Below the pieces are notes generated by a model. That model had not been told where the DNA came from. It did no database searches and saw only the letters and a program-made list of their open reading frames with translations. This document shows positions 6,001 through 22,859 of a stretch of DNA of 64,000 nucleotides, one piece after another. The stretch is taken from contig OZ059899.1 in assembly GCA_964057225.1 (NCBI GenBank), positions 8,494,001-8,558,000 on the forward strand, in the 5' to 3' direction. The translations under genes and the position numbers were made by a program. Every line of letters begins with the position of its first letter. The stretch's first letter is position 1. This stretch comes from Auanema rhodensis. Its lineage: Eukaryota > Animalia > Nematoda.

Positions 6001-8800
6001 GTCGTCGTTGACGTTGTAGATGGAGTCGTGCTCGTTGTTGTAGATGGTGTCGTCGTTGACGTTGTAGATGTTGTTGTAGATGGAGTTGTGCTCGTTGTTG
6101 TAGATGGAGTCGTCGTTGACGTTGTAGATGTCGTCGTAGATGGAGTCGTGCTCGTTGTTGTAGATGGTGTCGTCGTTGACGTTGTAGATGTTGTTGTAGA
6201 TGTTGTCGTAGATGGAGTCGTGCTCGTTGTTGTTGATGGTGTCGTCGTTGACGTTGTAGATGTTGTTGTAGATGGAGTTGTGCTCGTTGTTGTAGATGGA
6301 GTTGTGCTCGTTGACGTTGTAGATGTTGTCGTAGATGGAGTCGTGCTCGTTGTTGTAGATGGAGTCGTGCTCGTTGTTGTAGATGGTGTCGTCGTTGACG
6401 TTGTAGATGTTGTTGTAGATGGTGTCGTCGTTGACGTTGTAGATGTTGTCGTAGATGGAGTCGTGCTCGTTGTTGTAGATGGAGTCGTACTCGTTGTTGT
6501 AGATGGAGTCGTGCTCGTTGTTGTAGATGGAGTCGTCGTTGATGTTGTTGATGTTGTTGTAGATGGAGTTGTGCTCGTTGTTGTAGATGGAGTTGTGCTC
6601 GTTGACGTTGTAGATGTTGTCGTAGATGGAGTCGTGCTCGTTGTTGTAGATGGAGTCGTGCTCGTTGTTGTAGATGGAGTCGTGCTCGTTGTTGTAGATG
6701 GAGTTGTGCTCGTTGTTGTAGATGGAGTCGTCGTTGACGTTGTAGATGTCGTCGTAGATGGAGTCGTGCTCGTTGTTGTAGATGGAGTCGTGCTCGTTGT
6801 TGTAGATGGAGTCGTGCTCGTTGTTGTAGATGGTGTCGTCGTTGACGTTGTAGATGTTGTTGTAGATGGAGTTGTGCTCGTTGTTGTAGATGGAGTTGTG
6901 CTCGTTGACGTTGTAGATGTTGTCGTAGATGGAGTCGTGCTCGTTGTTGTAGATGGAGTCGTGCTCGTTGTTGTAGATGGTGTCGTCGTTGACGTTGTAG
7001 ATGTTGTTGTAGATGGTGTCGTCGTTGACGTTGTAGATGTTGTCGTAGATGGAGTCGTGCTCGTTGTTGTAGATGGAGTCGTGCTCGTTGTTGTAGATGG
7101 AGTCGTGCTCGTTGTTGTAGATGGAGTCGTCGTTGATGTTGTTGATGTTGTTGTAGATGGAGTCGTCGTTGACGTTGTAGATGTTGTTGTAGATGGAGTT
7201 GTGCTCGTTGTTGTAGATGGAGTCGTGCTCGTTGTTGTAGATGGAGTTGTCGTTGACGTTGTAGATGTTGTTGTAGATGGAGTCGTCGTTGACGTTGTAG
7301 ATGTCGTCGTAGATGGAGTCGTGCTCGTTGTTGTAGATGGAGTCGTGCTCGTTGTTGTAGATATAGTTGTCGTTGACGTTGTAGATGTTGTTGTGGATGG
7401 TGTCGTCGTTGACGTGGTAGATGTCGTTGTTGATGGAGTCGTGCTCGTTGTTGTAGATGGAGTCGTGCTCGTTGTTGTAGATGGTGTCGTCGTTGACGTT
7501 GTAGATGTTGTTGTAGATGGAGTCGTCGTTGACGTTGTAGATGTTGTTGTAGATGGAGTCGTGGTTGACGTCGTAGATGTCGTCGTAGATGGAGTCGTGC
7601 TCGTTGTTGTAGATGGTGTCGTCGTTGACGTTGTAGATGTTGTTGTAGATGGAGTCGTCGTTGACGTCGTAGATGTTGTTGTAGATGGAGTTGTGCTCGT
7701 TGTTGTAGATGGTGTCGTCGTTGACGTTGTAGATGTCGTCGTAGATGGAGTCGTGCTCGTTGTTGTAGATGGTGTCGTCGTTAACGTTGTAGATGTTGTT
7801 GTAGATGGAGTCGTCGTTGACGTCGTAGATGTTGTTGTAGATGGAGTTGTGCTCGTTGTTGTAGATGGTGTCGTCGTTGACGTTGTAGATGTCGTCGTAG
7901 ATGGAGTCGTGCTCGTTGTTGTAGATGGTGTCGTCGTTGACGTTGTAGATGTTGTTGTAGATGGTGTCGTCGTTGACGTTGTAGATGTTGTCGTAGATGG
8001 AGTCGTGCTCGTTGTTGTAGATGGAGTTGTCGTTGACGTTGTAGATGTTGTTGTGGATGGTATCGTCGTTGACGTTGTAGATGCTGTTGTAGATGGAGTC
8101 GTGCTCGTTGTTGTAGATGGTGTCGTCGTTGACGTTGTAGATGTCGTCGTAGATGGAGTCGTGCTCGTTGTTGTAGATGGAGTCGTGCTCGTTGTTCTAG
8201 ATGGAGTCGTCGTTGACGTCGTAGATGTTGTTGTAGATGGAGTCGTGCTCGTTGTTGTAGATGGAGTCGTCGTTGACGTTGTAGATGTCGTTGTAGATGG
8301 AGTCGTGCTCGTTGTTGTAGATGGAGTCGTCGTTGACGTTGTAGATGTCGTTGTAGTTGGAGTCGTGCTCGTTGTTGTAGATGGAGTCGTCGTTGACGTC
8401 GTAGATGTTGTTGTAGATGGAGTAGTGCTCGTTGTTGTAGATTGTGTCGTCGTTGACGTTGTAGACGTTGTTGTAGATGGTGTCGTCGTTGACGTTGTAG
8501 ATGTCGTCGTAGATGGAGTCGTGCTCGTTGTTGTAGATGGAGTCGTCGTTGACGTCGTAGATGTTGTTGTAGATGGTGTCGTCGTTGACGTTGTAGATGT
8601 CGTCGTAGATGGAGTCGTGCTCGTTGTTGTAGATGGAGTCGTACTCGTTGTTGTAGATGGTGTCGTCGTTGACGTCGTAGATGTTGTTGTAGATGGTGTC
8701 GTCGTTGACGTCGTAGATGTTGTTGTAGATGGTGTCGTCGTTGACGTCGTAGATGTTGTTGTAGATGGTGTCGTCGTGGACGTTGTGGATGTTGTAGTTG
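1..8800 (-). repeat. Coding tandem repeat of interleaved 24-bp (TTTSTTPS) and 36-bp (TTTSTTSTTTPS) units
   Basis: Plus-strand units gatggagtcgtgctcgttgttgta and gatggagtcgtcgttgacgttgtagatgttgttgta repeat throughout; observed length variants preserve frame. Confidence 0.97.
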
Positions 8801-14500: not shown

Positions 14501-17500
14501 ATTATATTTTACATATAATCATGTTCATTAACAGCTTTTATATGAACAAATCAAGAAAGGATTATGTTTTCAATCATATGGATATATCTTCATATTATAT
14601 AAAAATATATTTTTATATTATTTCATCTTAGCCCATTCATCTCAATATTCTATTAATAACAATCATTTTTGAATACATCTTATTCGTCTATTATTCCAAT
14701 TTTTTGATGACATTCAATTTTGAACGCATTACTAATAATAATCAATTTCTTATCATATTTTTCTCGCAAATCATATGAATATGCTTCTAACAAATTATTA
14801 TAGTTTCTACAAATAAAATTATTTTCTAATTCATTTTCGAAATACAAAATTCTATTGTATACAAAAAACTAAATTTTGCAAAAACTCAATTTAAAATGAG
14901 AAACATATGCAACGTTATGAATACTTATTCTCAACCTATTTTTTTATTTTCAAAAGCTTAGATATCGATAATCACATTGCTTCTTTTACAACTATCTTTT
15001 CTTACTAACATTGAATAAAGAAAGAATTTTATTATTAATTTTGTCTTCACTATTATAGAAGAAAAACAAGATGATATCATTTTGTGCTGAATTTAAAGGT
15101 AAATAGAAAAAGAAAAAATATATATCATCTTTATAAAGATTTCTACTTGTTTTTCTTCTCATGAAACGATGAGAATTATAGAAAAAATCTAAGAAATTGC
15201 CTGAATTGCCTCTTCATTTCCGTTTGTTTATTTGCAAAAAAAACTCTTCATTTTTTCTTTTTAACAATTTTACCAAAGTTTACATATGTATATATGTACA
15301 TATATGGTGGCTTGGTTGAACACCAAAAAATAACATCTTATGATGAGTAGTCTAAGAGATATGTGAGCACTTAAGAATTTTCAGTGTTTTTTTTTTCATC
15401 TGTATTATCTCATTCCGTTTACAATTTTTTTGAAATATATTTTGATTTCAAAAAGAATTTAAAACATATGCACTTAGGCGGTGATTATAAAGATGACAAA
15501 AATCTGTTACATCCGCTTGTTTTTATCAAGATTATTGAGGAAAAGAATCTTGAATTTCATCTATTAGTTCACGAAAATTATTTTTTTGATTCTAGTTGCT
15601 ATGTAGTTAACATTTCTTTCAAATAAGCCACTATATATATATATATGTGTGTGTATATATGTGTGTATACATCTATAATTGATATATTATTTATCATATT
15701 CATAATTTTATTTGAAAACTTCTTTTAGTAATATCGCACTCTCGCTACTACCCCCTCCTTTCCTGTTGTCCTCTCTTTCTCTTTATCTATCCAGAAAAGT
15801 TTTATTGCACCTCTACATCATAGTTACAATGAAGTTTTTTTTTCTTTTCTTTTTTTTCAATATATTGCTTAATTCAAGCTATAGCTAATATTTTATTATT
15901 CAAGCTATTTGATTCTGTCAGGAGAGCGCAAAAATACAACCAAGCTGCTCTTCGAAGGTTTTCAACGAATTTATTGACCTAACTTCTTCTGATCGAACTA
16001 CTAGGCCACACACAAATAACATCTTGATTCATGTAAGTTTTAATGAATTTTCACCATTTAATTTTTTTCTTACTCTTTTATTGTCTACATAAACCGAAAA
16101 CCTAGACTGAAAATCAACTAATATCTACAGACCATATTTCCCGGATATGTGACGTTTTTGCTTTCGATTTGCAAAGATATTTCTTTTCCATATTTGCACA
16201 ACTGAAAACGATAAATGGATATAGTTCAAGCTAGATTCCATATTTCCTATTCTCCTTTATGCATTTCATTATACGGGTACACGTGCATTACGTTCTTCAA
16301 TTCATGTTGAATGCAACGATACTTGAAATGGTTCATTTCGTATAATTCCGTCGACAAATTTCTATTTTCAATTTTTTATGAAATTACAAATGAAGCCTTT
16401 TTTTTCTTCTGTATAAAGTGCTGATGTGCTTCATATTTTGGTTATTCCCTATAAAATTATATTATCTCTTATAGTTTTTAATCTATATTATTTGAAACTC
16501 GCTAGGTCACAAGCTTCATTTCAAACTTTATTTTTCTCCTGATGTTACGAAATAGTCAAACAATCTAGTATCAGCTTATCAAATACCTCTGCCAAAGTCA
16601 GATGAGTTTTCTTTTATTTTATCATCACGCAACTGCTCTCTCTCTCAAAATCACATGGTAGTATATGAAGCAGAACAAGAACACATAGATACACAATTTT
16701 ATCGTCCAACCAGGTGTTTTTTACTAGTTATTGGTATACTTGTTTATCCTATTTATTTCAATTTTATAGTTTGGATTGATATTATAATTCCTTTTTCAGC
16801 TATACTTATCTCACTTATCCGTTCAGTTTTTCTCTGATTACAAAAAAAAAACTAAGAAAATATTCTTCAACAGATGGTATTTATTTGCATTGTATCATGA
16901 GTATCATGAGTTTGTTCGCACTGTGCATCACTTTTTCTACTTATCTTCACATTTCTATCTTTTCTACCTTCTTCACACCACATATTCTTCTATATCTCTT
17001 CCTATTTCTCTTCTCCTATATTCCCTCCAATAGTCTCTCTCCCTCTTTTTCTTCATCCTCTTTCAGTTTGAGCTCGTCTTCTGTTCCACTCGTGACCGAC
17101 TTTCTATCGATGACAACGACGACTTGTTTTCCGGACTCCTCTTGCCGATCTGCTGTCCTCCGTTTTCGTTGGTTCTCTCAGCTCCTGCTTCATTTTGAGT
17201 AAAACATATATTTCACACTCTTGGTTTTTTTTCTTTCGTTTCAACCAACAACCAAGATTATTTTTTATTGCATAACTATTTTTCATATTTTCAACATCAA
17301 CCAACTCTTTGTAAATATTCTATATTCGGATTGACTCAATGCGGTCTGAGTTTCAAATTACATCGTTTAGTATAATATATAATGGAATACAAGCCCGTTT
17401 TCAACTTAATTTTCCACCATCATAAAACCCATTCCAATAACAAATAGAAGTTTTATTTTTTTAATTAGTTTACTATTTGAGAAAACAGCTATGAATTCCA

Positions 17501-18999
17501 CGAAGGTGGTCAAACTAGCAACATCAGACACTGCAAATCTAGTTGCGGCAATTACCATCCAATCCGACTTAAGTCGGTATGACATTAAGGCGACTCAAAA
17601 GCCATATTTCATTCTTGATTTTGTCTTCATATTTCTGTCTTTGTAGAACATTGTCTACCGTGACCTGACATAGTACGCTACCAGCACTTTTAGTGCTCAA
17701 CGAACATCTCGACGAACTTTAAAATTACACTTCAGCTTATTTCTCCTCTTAGATAAAAAATATAGTTATTTTTTTACTCATTCGTGGCTTTTCATACTAG
17801 GGTTCAAATAATTGTTCCTTTTCCTATATTCAGTTCAGAAAACACAAGACTTTTTGAAAAAATAAAAATAGTGAACTTATGGAATAATGAAAAACCAAGC
17901 TGTTGAGGTCTTCAGGATTTTTCAAAAACAATCCCTATGCATTTAAAAATGACGCAACCACCCTTTCAGAGCCGTTTGAATAAAAAAACAACGTTTCACC
18001 TAGTGCATATAAGTGCAGAAGCACAACGAAAAAAAGAAGCATTAAATCACGGCATCCGAATCCATTAACAGAGATATAAGCTAATGAATGTTATTAGAAG
18101 TTTATTTGTTCAGAACTTTTAACTAAGACTAGCAAAAGAACTGATATGCTATATAGAGTTGAATAATTAAAAATATATAAATTATACAATTTCATTTCCT
18201 TTTTTTGTCTGCCCTACGGTGATCAATACTATTTTATATACATATTTCCTCTGGGCTGGCATAATCATGTAGGAGATGTGTAATAACAATACCGTTTTCT
18301 TATTTATTTAAATCGCCATTTTTTCGATTATGATATTTGAAATTAACCGTTTCATTATAAAAAACACACACATTTTTCTCGAGAAAAGACTAATACTAAG
18401 TAATACACGTCATGTTTAAAGGAATACAATTTAGTTAAAAAATCAGCTTATACTTGACGAGATCAATAACATTAAAGAATCTGTCTATGCATATGTCCTC
18501 CTCTGAGTACTCGCGCTGGTTGTGGTAGACGCAGTCCACTGCCTTCGTCTTCGTGCTAGGACTCTCTTTCTCTAATCCATAGCTTCCCATGGCGAGGTTT
18601 CGACTCCGCCCTACTATCTCCCAAACACACCAAGATATCATAGCGCTAGGTTTATTCCTATTTTTTGTTGTCGCTATTCAATAAACTGTTGCATTATTTT
18701 TTTAAAATCTATTCTGTTTAATATTTGTTAATAATTGGTTCTGTAGTTTTTTTCGATCATTTCAAATATAATTTCGCTAGAAATTGTCATGGCGACACTA
18801 AGTATATTTGTGCTCTTTTTGCTTCAAACAGATTGCGAAATTCAACGAGTTTCTGTCTTTTGGCTACATCGGTTAAATTTTTACATGTTATCGCTTTCAC
18901 ACGAGCTTCTGTTTATTTTCATATATTTTCAAAATGTTTACATCATATTTTGAACTTTCTCACGTTGTTTTTGTGTAAAACTCATTATTTTCTTTACAG

Positions 19000-19087
19000 T
19001 TATCACGCATCTCGTTCGGCTACGAGAAGCTATTGACGATTGAAATAGTGCTATGAGCATAGGCCCTCATCAAACTAACATCTACAG
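19000..19087 (+). other. Putative 5' leader exon of prl-1 carrying the uORF start
   Basis: tctttacag acceptor and CAG|gtttgt donor; ATG at 19053. Confidence 0.65.
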
Positions 19088-20106
19088 GTTTGTTCTTTTT
19101 TTCATGATATATGTCTGTTGTACGGATATTACACTGCACGTTGTTCATATATCCATTTTTGTTTTTGATTTTTTGACTTTTTCTTGAGAATTAGATTCAA
19201 AACTCCTATAGGGAATATAAAATATGTTCATTAATTTGTTCACTAATAATAAAAAAAAAACAGTTGATATATCATACATAATGCAGGCCCTGTTGCTCGT
19301 TAATCTGCTCTTTGCTAATCCGCTTTCCTTATAAATCTCTTACAAATTTACTATCAGATGATCTTAACATCTCTCCGGTTTTGTTTCTTTTTTTTTCACC
19401 TTTCGGCCGCTGACCATTTTAAAATTCATCTTCTACTTCATTGAATTAATACCCTTTAAAAAAATACCTTTAGTTCCTTATTCATCTTTCAAAGTTGTAT
19501 TCAATCCTTTTAAACTTTTTTCAAACATTTTCTTAGTCATCAATCCTGCCAACGTTTAGTGGAAAATGTTTTATATTTTGAGTTCCTCATGGTATTGATC
19601 TTTTTTTACTATAGATTATAGTTTATTAGATTCTCATATCGAACTTCTATTTGAGAAGTTTATCTTATCTATTCAAAAAGTTTGATTAAATTTCTTCTGT
19701 TTTGCTCGCGTCACATTCAGTTTTCTTGTTTTTTTTCGACCAATAAAATTATCTTTATTGACTCAAGACTGTTTGCAATTAGTCTTTGACTGTTTGTATC
19801 ATTACATCTCAATTCCCTTCCGGATTTCTTCGGAGAAATTTTGAAAAACGGTTTAGCTGTTTTTATCTGAACCAAACCTGTCCTGAAATTCCACCTTCCG
19901 TTCTTTTGCCTTAAATGTCTTTCAAATACGTTTGCATGTCGGAATGACGGCTTCCATTTCCCTTTTAAATTCAGCGTGTAATGTCATGATCTATTAGAAT
20001 TTATAAGGAAGATTCTTAGTCTAATTTTTATAGCCGGTTGACAAATAGGGACTTGGCCCCGGCTGCTGAATACTGCAGAGCGCAGCACGAATTCGGTTGC
20101 CGTTGA
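19053..20106 (+). CDS. Spliced upstream ORF (35 aa) in the prl-1 leader: MSIGPHQTNIYSRLTNRDLAPAAEYCRAQHEFGCR
   Basis: 19053-19087 joins 20034-20106 in phase 2 (acceptor tttttatag). The second part is a GC-rich island in AT-rich DNA. The exon continues to 20184, and intron 20185-20227 links it to the exon with the prl-1 ATG. Confidence 0.7.
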
Positions 20107-20253
20107 CTAGTGCAGGACATTATTCACAAAAGAACCGTATTTCATTGTATTTATTTACAACCACCTTGATTAATATTTTTAGAGGTTAGTTTTTTCTCAG
20201 TCATGCTTTACTATCAAGCTTTTTAAGATATAAACATTATTTATCAATATAAA

Positions 20254-21047
20254 ATGGGTAGTGCGACCGCTCAAAAAAGAATGGCTGTAAGCCCAGCTTA
20301 TTTCAAGCCTGCTCCTTCCGAAATTGCGTTCGGTCGTATGCGGTATGTTTTTATTTACTTTATCTTGTTTAATATCGCCTTTGCAGATTTCTTATCACTG
20401 ATCGACCAAACGATAGCTCAATTAACAGTTTCATTGAAGTGAGATTTTATTCTTTTCTTTTATTAAATCAATTTTTTGACTTTCAGGAATTAGATAAACA
20501 TTCTGCGAAGTCTGTAGTTAGGGTTTGTGAACCTTCCTATGAAATCAAACCTCTTACTGAGCATGGTATTGATGTTCTTGATTGGGAATTTTCCGATGGT
20601 AGCCCTCCACCAAAAGAAGTAAGCTGGAAATCGTTATATAATATTATTATGCGTTTCTTAGGTTATTCGCGATTGGCTGAATTTGGTGAGATCATCTTTC
20701 AAAGATTCCAGCAGTCCCGAGCAATGCATCGCTGGTACGCTTTTTTATCTATTTTGCTGTTGTAGTTATTCACTTTTAGTTCATTGCGTAGCTGGTCTTG
20801 GTAGGGCTCCTGTACTGGTTGCTCTAGCTCTTATTGAAGCTGGAATGAAATATGAAGATGCTGTTGATCTTATACGAAGGTAGTGGTTTTGTTGTTGCTT
20901 CATTCAATACGTTATGTTTTCAGACATCGAAGAGGAGCTCTTAATCAAAGGCAGCTAACTTTCTTAGAGAAGTATAAGCCCACCGGAGAATTACGTAAGC
21001 TACGTTATTCCATTGATGGCAAGCCCAAAGCGTGCTGTATTATGTGA
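20254..21047 (+). CDS. prl-1: PRL (PTP4A) prenylated protein tyrosine phosphatase
   Basis: KPAPSEI...[28 protein letters not shown], catalytic [27 protein letters not shown]-terminal CAAX CCIM*; six exons. Confidence 0.96.
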
Positions 21048-21493
21048 TTTTTTTTTGTGTTACTATCGCTTATTTTAAAAGCTATTATTTCAAAGCAAAC
21101 CTCTGAGCTTACCGTCCCGGTTATTAAGTTATCCTCTAACACTATTAATTAATCTTGTGATTGCTCTTTATATTGTAGTACAATACTGGATATGAAAAGC
21201 ATTTCGATTCGATGTTCTGTTTTTTTATTACGATAATTTTAAAGACATTTTTGTTTTTGATTCTTTTGTTCGCCTTTGTATTATATAATGCTCTCGTTTT
21301 ATTTTTGCTAAAAAGCAATTCACCGTTTCAATGCTCTTACTTCTAATAAGTCGTGATATATATTGATCATTATTCAATCGTATCGAAGTTATGCGAATTG
21401 TCACTTTCCAGTGCCCATAAGAATGAATAGTAATCCGAAATATTGTGTATGTACATGTATTTGAGATAAAACATATATACAAATAGAAATGAT

Positions 21494-21903
21494 TTACAAT
21501 TCAACAAGTCTTCCTTCCTCATTGATGTCGTCCTCATTCTCGTCTTTATCATAACCAACTTCGAAAGCTCCTGATAAAACTGCTGCAGTTAGTTCATCTT
21601 CATCGTCATCTTCCCCCAAGGCACGGCGTCGTTTTCTTAATTAAGTTATACAATCACAAAAAGCTAAAATAAATTAAACCTTCGAAGTCGAGCTTTATAG
21701 CACTGCATGCACTTGGTGATAACAAAACATGTCACAAAGAGTATAACTCCTCCAGATAAAAACGTTATTACAGCGAACATAACGGATTCTAGGTCTTGCC
21801 CGAAAGTTTTTATTACTCTACCAGCTTTTGCTACAAAACAATAATATTCAGATAACTAAAATCCTTACTTACTTGGTGAAGGTTTCTGAAGCAAATCCGT
21901 CAT
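21494..21903 (-). CDS. Small single-pass membrane protein with basic then acidic tail, unknown function
   Basis: Three exons: MTDLLQKPSP | TKAGRV...VMFAVITFLSGGVILFVTCFVITKCMQCYKARLR | RKRRRALGEDDDEDE...EEGRLVEL*. Confidence 0.75.
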
Positions 21904-22859
21904 TTATTTTTTAAATTTCATCTGTTTAACTAGAACGTAGGTGAAAAAGTGGATGAAGAAGAATTCAGAACCACTAATTTTTCGTTAATACATCAAAGTG
22001 AAAGAGAAAAGGCAGCTGAACGTGAAAGAGAACGAGATAATAGCTGAAGAGGAAGAGTATGAATGAATCGCTTCTGTTTTGCATGTACAAGCTGTTTGCT
22101 TCGAAACAGCTGTCCTTCTTCAATGTGAGTTTTCATCTTTTGCGAGACGAAGGCTAAGGATACGTTAGATATAATCGTCTCTGCTCTCACTTATATTCAA
22201 TAATTTGATTTCCTCAGGTACGAAATGTACTACTACATCTATGAATTTTTAGAACATTATCTAAAAATTTACCAATAGATGATTTACATGAAATTAATAT
22301 CTTAATACATTTCGCACGTTACGTTTAAGAAATGTGTTGATTGATCTTGTGGAAGTAAAGAAAAATAAACAAAGTTTCCCGGTGTCAAAATAATTGTTCA
22401 TTTACTCAAACTGCTTCAACGTTTTGTTTTGGTTTATTAAATACGACATGACAATTTTCGAATTTGAATGTAAAATACAATTATAATCGAGCATGTGAAA
22501 ATAATTTGAATGTTAAAAAAATTCAAATCACGTGCCTTATAAAGCTTCTAATTCCAAGCATGAGTGCATACTTCCTCAAATCTAAGTTGCACGTGTTTTA
22601 TCGAATATAACTTAACATCTGTAGCTTTATTTCGTGTAAGAATTATAAATTCAAACAAATATGTGATCAATTCGACAGAATTAACATAGTTTTCAAAATT
22701 GTGGATATATTACTGAGCAGAGCTCAAATGCCGTTTTATAAAACGTTAGGAAAAGGTTTGAAAATGAGAGACTGCTGTTAATCATAACAATTTTTTTGTA
22801 AAGTTAATAGAAATAAGAGTTAAAAATCAAATACACTTAAAAATATGAATATTCACCAG

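Follow-up and report, generated by a model that had tools for sequence, protein, structure and literature searches.

A conserved peptide-encoding upstream open reading frame in the prl-1 leader of Auanema rhodensis and a candidate readthrough tail in nematodes

Introduction

In the nematode Auanema rhodensis, the leader of the phosphatase gene prl-1 contains a short open reading frame (ORF) that is split by an intron and ends ahead of the main start codon. PRL phosphatases control Mg2+ balance via CNNM transporters and are potent oncogenes. The locus raises the question of whether the short frame is incidental or a conserved upstream open reading frame (uORF) that acts on prl-1. We analysed a stretch of 64,000 nucleotides (nt) from this species (assembly GCA_964057225.1, contig OZ059899.1, positions 8,494,001 to 8,558,000 of the forward strand), here called the window, and all coordinates refer to it unless stated otherwise. 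The explanation that we favour, with good overall confidence, is a conserved peptide uORF that would control prl-1 and that would have a second layer in nematodes, located beyond the stop codon of the uORF.

The uORF family is known already from vertebrates. A conserved uORF of PRL-1/2 (PTP4A1/PTP4A2) is reported to confer sequence-dependent, Mg2+-responsive translational repression (Hardy et al. 2019, as described in PMC11855589 and PMC10083557; PMC7530721), and the conserved peptide uORF (CPuORF) of human PTP4A1 represses the main ORF in reporters in a sequence-dependent manner (PMC7530721). The PRL protein of C. elegans binds the CBS domains of CNNM (PMC10040874).

Results

A spliced uORF in the prl-1 leader

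The gene downstream of the uORF is identified by its sequence as the PRL/PTP4A orthologue PRL-1. Its coding exons are located at 20254-20342, 20387-20438, 20487-20618, 20662-20734, 20780-20879 and 20924-21047, with introns of 43-48 nt. The protein is identical at 177/189 positions to P0001, the PRL protein of Auanema sp. JU1783, and P0001 matches the solved structures of PTP4A1/2/3 with E 1e-59 to 1e-62. We propose that the leader consists of three exons (19000-19087, 20034-20184 and 20228 onward), the splicing in A. rhodensis being predicted from orthologous leaders. The features are as follows, with a slash marking a splice junction.

18988..18999, forward strand: 3' splice acceptor (ttctttacag) before leader exon 1, a probable trans-splice site for spliced leader 1 (SL1); the AG is also present in Auanema L001 and C. 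nigoni L012
19000..19087, forward strand: leader exon 1, with 53 nt, uORF codons 1-11 and 2 nt; alignable with the leaders of transcripts L003 and L004
19053..19087, forward strand: uORF start MSIGPHQTNIY followed by AG/, a Ser codon split in phase 2
19088..20033, forward strand: leader intron 1, 946 nt, GT...AG, interrupting the uORF
20034..20184, forward strand: leader exon 2; its donor AG/GTTAGT at 20184/20185 is kept in L001
20065..20088, forward strand: peptide core A-E-Y-C-R-A-Q-H, found in 8 nematodes and 6 other animal lineages
20104..20110, forward strand: first stop in the putatively leaky context UGA CUA G; TGA CTA is common to 7 nematode leaders
20107..20166, forward strand: in-frame 20-codon extension LVQDIIHKRTVFHCIYLQPP
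20167..20169, forward strand: second stop TGA, directly after Pro-Pro and 41 spliced nt upstream of the main ATG
20185..20227, forward strand: leader intron 2, 43 nt, GTTAGT...TTTTTAAG, similar in size to the introns of the coding region
20228..20253, forward strand: leader part of exon 3, without ATG
20254..21047, forward strand: prl-1 coding region, six exons, 189 amino acids (aa), with a C(X)5R protein tyrosine phosphatase loop and the CaaX motif CCIM

Spliced across intron 1, the ATG at 19053 opens a frame of 35 codons that encodes a 35-aa peptide and ends at the TGA at 20104-20106. A sequence-only reading of the window had proposed this frame, and arithmetic on the spliced sequence reproduces it exactly, including the in-frame junction 19087/20034 and, with the 43-nt second leader intron removed, the 104 spliced nt between the uORF stop and the prl-1 ATG at 20254. 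It had also noted that the ORF list misses the uORF, and this list, made from unspliced DNA, indeed contains only a 44-aa run-on (19053-19187) at the uORF ATG. The donor is AG/GTTTGT at 19087/19088 and the acceptor is TTTTTATAG/C at 20033/20034. The content of guanine and cytosine (GC) is 57.5% in 20034-20106 but drops to 30% in intron 1 and to 29.5% in the remainder of exon 2, in agreement with the GC-rich island in AT-rich DNA that the same reading had described.

The uORF begins with an AUG and ends before the main ORF starts. Its AUG is the sole upstream ATG in the spliced leader of the window, where 4.6 are expected, and each rhabditid leader contains one upstream AUG, which is that of the uORF, as compared to 3.3-4.7 expected. 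The distance from the uORF end to the main ATG is 104-122 nt in five rhabditids. Identity to Auanema L001 is 96-100% over leader exon 1 and the uORF, with 97-100% for the uORF itself, and 55% over intron 1.

The uORF in the leaders of other nematodes

The nematode comparison included eight members, namely the window, Auanema, a strongylid-like, a Mesorhabditis-like and a Plectus-like nematode, C. nigoni, Pristionchus and Brugia. Transcripts with the same uORF were found in relatives (L003, L004, L005/6, L020 and L030), and these contain the type of junction that was proposed at 19087/20034. The strongylid-like transcript L003, which encodes a PRL that is 87% identical to that of Teladorsagia, carries gtgctATGAGCATAGGC... 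and then ...CAG/CCGG... already joined, and its core, its stop and the rest of its leader beyond the junction are as in the window. The first bases of the Mesorhabditis-like transcript L004 are CAAGTTTGAG, which is how SL1 ends at its 3' side, and the uORF ATG follows 56 nt later. Trans-splicing in this relative thus takes place upstream of the uORF rather than downstream of it, and the uORF is retained in the capped mRNA. In the window, conservation with Auanema JU1783 begins at 18988, at the first base of the probable trans-splice acceptor.

The position of the intron inside the uORF is also shared. When the Brugia transcript L020 is placed on its genome (L019), the uORF is split by a phase-2 intron after AG, as in the window, and the same phase-2 AG/ intron splits the uORF in Pristionchus pacificus (L030 on genome L029). 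The genomic DNA of C. nigoni contains an exon at 7883-7978 with MRIG... and, from 9784 onward, a segment with ...GEYCRGQH, for which the intron position is a prediction. The start M-S/R-I-G and its nucleotide context ATGAG(C/A)AT(A/T)GG are common to Auanema, the strongylid-like and Mesorhabditis-like nematodes, C. nigoni and Pristionchus. The cores of C. nigoni (GEYCRGQH) and lamprey (GDLCQAQH) were recovered with a looser motif scan and not with the strict one.

The leader intron located just upstream of the main ATG has a homologue in Auanema, is verified by transcripts in Pristionchus and Brugia, and is predicted in C. nigoni. Retention of this intron in the window would expose an ATG at 20202 with a 7-codon ORF (ATG CTT TAC TAT CAA GCT TTT TAA, 20202-20225), for which Auanema shows no conservation. 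We considered the acceptor-like TTTTCTCAG at 20192-20200 as the main trans-splice site and rejected it, as it falls within leader intron 2 and Auanema does not conserve it; it may be in minor use for trans-splicing.

Selection on the uORF peptide

The C-terminal part of the uORF contains a constrained core, G/A-[DE]-[YF]-C-[RQ]-[AG]-Q-H. The codons of the core vary synonymously, with AGA, CGA and AGG for Arg, GCG, GCT and GCA for Ala, TGC and TGT for Cys, TAC and TAT for Tyr, and CAG and CAA for Gln. For a core of seven codons compared among eight lineages, the proportion of synonymous differences (pS) is 0.87, which is saturated, and that of nonsynonymous differences (pN) is 0.115, giving a ratio of 0.13. 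The corresponding ratio is 0.73 for the four codons preceding the core. Since the amino acids are kept while the codons change, the pattern of substitutions indicates that selection is on the uORF peptide and not on the RNA, and the interpretation of the island as constrained coding sequence in the sequence-only reading is borne out for the core.

If the conserved block were instead an RNA element, for example a structure or a binding site for a protein or a microRNA, the open frame would be incidental. The GC-rich island would suit such an element, as would the nucleotide invariance of TGACTA in seven nematodes and the high conservation of the leader 5' of the ATG between two Auanema-like genomes. 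However, no consensus RNA structure was found across six nematodes (-1.25 kcal/mol), the fold of the window leader is no better than those of shuffled sequences (z = -0.57), and a scan of 17500-22000 against Rfam at E<=1 gave no match. Moreover, third positions, and even the first positions of Arg codons, vary while the amino acids stay, and every length difference is a multiple of three. We consider an RNA element highly improbable.

Homologues outside the nematodes and the age of the uORF

Homologous uORFs were identified in PRL leaders from several other phyla. The uORF ends with ...LMEYLKTTGEYCRAQHK in an arachnid, whose PRL protein is 94% identical to that of Hadrurus, and reads MEFQLDSGEYCQAQHK in the termite Cryptotermes and ...TFMEFLRNSGEYCQAQHV in the annelid Lamellibrachia. 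Transcripts of zebrafish ptp4a1 contain ...TFMEFLKGSGDYCQAQH..., located 105 nt upstream of the main ATG, and genomic DNA of the lamprey contains the core GDLCQAQH in the PRL leader. In a shark gene model of the PTP4A1 type (P0171), the uORF peptide is fused ahead of MARMNRPAPVE. Further models in which the uORF, or its exon in another frame, is fused to the PRL N-terminus are P0180, P0009 (C. auriculariae), P0033 (Trichuris muris) and P0038. The annelid, termite and arachnid uORFs bridge the vertebrate core to the AEYCRAQH and GEYCRAQH of the nematodes. The homology to the vertebrate PRL uORF, which had been put forward without an alignment, is thereby supported by the core in zebrafish, shark and lamprey, and amino-acid conservation is seen in other PRL leaders.

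An unbiased scan of metagenomes for codons encoding G-E-Y-C-R-[AG]-Q-H gave 73 matches, six of which have a PRL gene just downstream. The other 67/73 have no PRL gene nearby and were rejected as chance matches. The six PRL-linked matches come from one invertebrate and five AT-rich organisms. The latter are probable bdelloid rotifers, judged from a GC content of 31% and from the CCAAGAG at the start of one transcript, which we take to be the end of the rotifer spliced leader.

Two side observations concern the arthropod and annelid leaders. The termite (L024) and the annelid (L028) use different stop codons for the uORF, yet in both the stop is directly followed by GTCATTGTC, which reads V-I-V in the uORF frame; the match may be a coincidence or reflect conservation of the context after the stop. 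The leader of the Drosophila PRL-1 gene contains a conserved small open reading frame of 42 aa (Mackowiak 2015 supplement) without the CRAQH/CQAQH core, while the termite has the core, and Diptera may have replaced the ancestral PRL uORF.

These comparisons bear on two alternatives. The first is that the frame is a chance ORF without selected function. Short ORFs are common in AT-rich leaders, and a spliced ORF of 35 codons proves nothing alone. Yet at least 14 PRL leaders, belonging to several phyla, contain the same core, its pN/pS is low and upstream ATGs are depleted, and these comparative data refute the alternative, to which we assign a negligible probability. The second is that the uORF encodes a free micropeptide that acts in trans, with any effect on prl-1 translation being secondary. 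Peptide-level selection over more than 500 million years and the conservation of the N-terminal MSIG within rhabditids would both be compatible with a micropeptide. On the other hand, only about eight C-terminal residues are constrained and the rest is free in length and sequence, the element belongs to a PRL leader in every case, and the vertebrate counterpart works in cis in reporter assays (PMC7530721), so that a micropeptide acting in trans is improbable.

Based on sequence homology, we conclude that the nematode prl-1 uORF is very probably a real conserved peptide uORF and the orthologue of the conserved vertebrate PTP4A1 uORF. Its phylogenetic distribution dates it to the bilaterian ancestor at the latest.

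A conserved in-frame tail beyond the first stop

In the sequence-only reading, the peptide was taken to end at 20104-20106. The position of the stop stands, but a conserved in-frame continuation at 20107-20169 was overlooked. The first stop is UGA CUA in 7/8 nematodes, with all three bases of CUA invariant, and in 7/7 of the TGA-CTA nematodes the uORF frame runs on beyond this stop for 17-49 codons before the next stop, although the tails have six different lengths. The tail ends with CIYLQPP in the window, with CVYLQPP, CVYLRPP, ITFKPP and HHLRPP in relatives, and with HLLRPP in Pristionchus. The two prolines are directly followed by the second stop, as CCA CCT TGA at 20161-20169 in the window and as CCN CCN stop in seven nematodes. 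This site is located 16-137 nt upstream of the main AUG in relatives, compared to 41 nt in the window.

The nucleotide variation at the tail end includes CCA, CCG, CCT and CCC for Pro, AGG or CGT for Arg, and TGA or TAA for the second stop. The pN/pS of the last four tail codons (L-x-P-P) is 0.22, and the coding signature between the two stops is strong only over the last 4-8 codons. As estimated by shuffling, the probability that the next in-frame stop follows Pro-Pro by chance is 0.0001-0.023 per species. A prediction for Pristionchus (TGA CTA and an in-frame ...PP-stop) was written before the sequence was retrieved, and it was confirmed. The Pristionchus leader contains MSIG..., GEYCRGQH, TGA CTA G and ...HLLRPP-stop, and an intron inside the tail across which the frame is kept.

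A comparable arrangement is present in two contigs from the probable rotifers (L069 and L076). Their uORF stops at TGA CTA G, and the in-frame tail beyond it is likewise conserved but has another sequence, ...HC[SA]NKFDWCLISTK[LI]RD-stop. These two tails differ by synonymous changes, by TGA or TAA as the second stop and by an in-frame indel of eight codons. A paralogous type from the probable rotifers (L047/L056/L093) has TAA TTC and no tail.

UGA CUAG is cited as the mammalian readthrough consensus (bioRxiv 10.1101/2021.04.18.440353), and two C-terminal prolines before the stop are key to the termination arrest at uORF2 of human cytomegalovirus (hCMV) (PMC4605324). In AMD1, readthrough is followed by arrest at the next stop, and the authors suggest that further cases exist (PMC13025110). 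With these precedents, the sequence features point, with some confidence, to translation of the extension by readthrough, and they likely constitute a readthrough-then-stall module in the nematode leader.

The post-stop segment could alternatively be a separate element, either a non-AUG uORF or a nucleotide motif, in which case the uORF would end at the UGA without readthrough. The nearly neutral N-terminal part of the extension and the Brugia leader, which has no extension, would fit this explanation. Against it speak the in-frame position of the tail in 7/7 species despite six lengths (~1/3^6 by chance), the lack of a visible conserved near-cognate start, and the recurrence of UGA CUAG with a coding tail in the probable rotifers. 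In addition, none of the three bases of CUA varies, as would suit a context signal better than a Leu codon. We regard a separate element as unlikely.

Comparison with known systems

Similar to the vertebrate PTP4A1/PTP4A2 uORF, the nematode uORF is located in the leader of the orthologous gene, starts with AUG and does not overlap the main ORF (~105 nt upstream in zebrafish, 104 nt here). Both have a homologous C-terminal core under selection at the peptide level, which is GDYCQAQH in fish and shark and AEYCRAQH here. The nematode uORF differs in that its N-terminal half (MSIG...) is unrelated, it is split by an intron and it has Arg in place of Gln in the core. It also has the UGA CUA and the Pro-Pro-stop tail, which fish, shark and lamprey do not have.

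The tail resembles the AMD1 C-tail (PMC13025110, PMC8831848), in which a minority of ribosomes passes the stop, translates a conserved in-frame tail and is arrested at the next stop, which limits translation; the same series of events is proposed here from sequence features. However, the AMD1 device is located after the main ORF and its arrest involves an Arg hook and an FRK clamp, whereas the nematode device would be located inside the 5' leader, after the uORF, and would have a Pro-Pro terminus. The two tails have no sequence similarity. In uORF2 of the hCMV gp48/UL4 gene (PMC4605324), which is also short, two C-terminal prolines before the stop block eRF1-mediated peptide release and repress the downstream ORF. 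The elements are not homologous, and the hCMV Pro-Pro-stop ends the uORF proper, while here it ends a tail beyond the UGA, so the similarity is one of analogy only. With the mammalian UGA CUAG readthrough genes, the nematode leader has in common the seven-nucleotide context (TGA CTA G) and, beyond it, a coding signature that is conserved. The known cases extend main ORFs and not a uORF, and a similar effect of the context in nematodes would be an extrapolation from mammals.

In the literature, we found no invertebrate case of a Mg2+ response of a PRL uORF, and no paper linking prl-1, C. elegans and uORF, although tables on the taxonomic range of the PTP4A1 CPuORF were outside this search. A full-text search gave no match to CRAQH, and CQAQH was found only in unrelated papers on defensins and plants. 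Neither the core motif nor worm prl-1 is among the entries listed in the supplements of Mackowiak 2015, and Hayden and Bosco 2008 do not mention PRL. A leader in which a leaky stop is combined with a Pro-Pro-stop tail seems not to have been described before.

Sequences surrounding the uORF and prl-1

Intron 1 contains a conserved block that is not part of the uORF (19746..19803, no strand assigned), with 91% identity over 58 nt to Auanema L001 9509-9566. The block contains TGTTTGC and TGTTTGT, which resemble forkhead-type sites, and judged by its conservation it may be an intronic enhancer. Upstream of the leader, three further blocks are conserved with Auanema, at 17076-17169 (86%), 18485-18612 (73%) and 18782-18810 (93%). 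No gene is called in L001 at these blocks, which probably belong to the promoter or the outron of prl-1. Downstream, 21494-22121 on the minus strand is conserved with L001 11257-11884, where a minus-strand gene of 106 aa is called, and in C. nigoni a minus-strand gene of 105 aa directly follows prl-1 (L012 11282-11879). The small minus-strand gene after prl-1 thus represents conserved synteny.

Discussion

We infer that the uORF is translated and acts on prl-1 through its peptide. By analogy with the vertebrate element, it is probably a cis repressor of prl-1. In the proposed mechanism, the SL1-capped prl-1 mRNA would be scanned and nearly every 43S complex would start at the single upstream AUG, after which the nascent core peptide would slow the ribosome near the uORF end. 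Ribosomes that terminate at the UGA would be able to scan onward and to initiate again at the prl-1 AUG, located about 100 nt further on with no AUG between, and the output of PRL-1 would be set by the share of ribosomes that resume and reach this AUG. A fraction of the ribosomes would read through the UGA CUA, arrest at the Pro-Pro-stop and block the scanning ribosomes behind them. The input would likely be the cellular Mg2+ or energy state, by homology with the vertebrate element, and PRL-1 would feed back through the CNNM transporters. That the uORF responds to Mg2+ in worms is possible by the same analogy, although we lean slightly against it.

Several observations weigh against this mechanism. 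The first 12 codons of the extension are almost neutral (68% identity to Auanema), and Brugia keeps the core but has TGA ATT and no Pro-Pro tail, so that not every nematode has the second layer. Between the core and the first stop there are 0-8 codons, a variability that is uncommon among peptides acting purely by termination arrest. Some transcripts in the termite (L025/L026), Brugia (L021/L022) and the lamprey (L018) do not contain the uORF region; these may be alternative leaders that provide a route to bypass the uORF, or truncated assemblies. Finally, the vertebrate side of the comparison consists of zebrafish, shark and lamprey, and the fish and shark uORF is presumed to be the Mg2+-sensitive one on the grounds that PTP4A1 has no other conserved uORF.

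A more far-reaching proposal, which is speculative and which we doubt, is that the leader contains a two-stage ribosome-based sensor, in which the ancient arrest peptide is combined with Mg2+-dependent readthrough of the UGA CUA into the Pro-Pro-stop. Decoding accuracy depends on Mg2+, and the frequency of readthrough could for this reason also be Mg2+-dependent, so that the decoding centre itself would be the Mg2+ sensor. High Mg2+ would then shut off PRL-1 synthesis through readthrough and blocking, and low Mg2+ would release it. The tail would be a reusable module of nematode leaders, with a related device in rotifers.

The conserved peptide uORF with a second layer in nematodes, which remains the explanation that we favour, would be relevant to PRL biology in several ways. 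To our knowledge, the uORF is the main known control of PRL and has been studied only in vertebrate cells. The same peptide uORF is found in nematodes (the lineages of Caenorhabditis and Pristionchus among them), in arthropods and annelids, and in probable rotifers. This narrows the essential part of the uORF to eight residues and opens the mechanism to worm genetics. A practical lesson is that gene predictors sometimes merge the uORF with the PRL protein, examples being the models from the shark, C. auriculariae and Trichuris. We know of no readthrough-then-stall device documented so far other than that downstream of the AMD1 coding region. If the leaky stop and the Pro-Pro-stop tail are used, they would represent a readthrough-then-stall switch inside a 5' leader.

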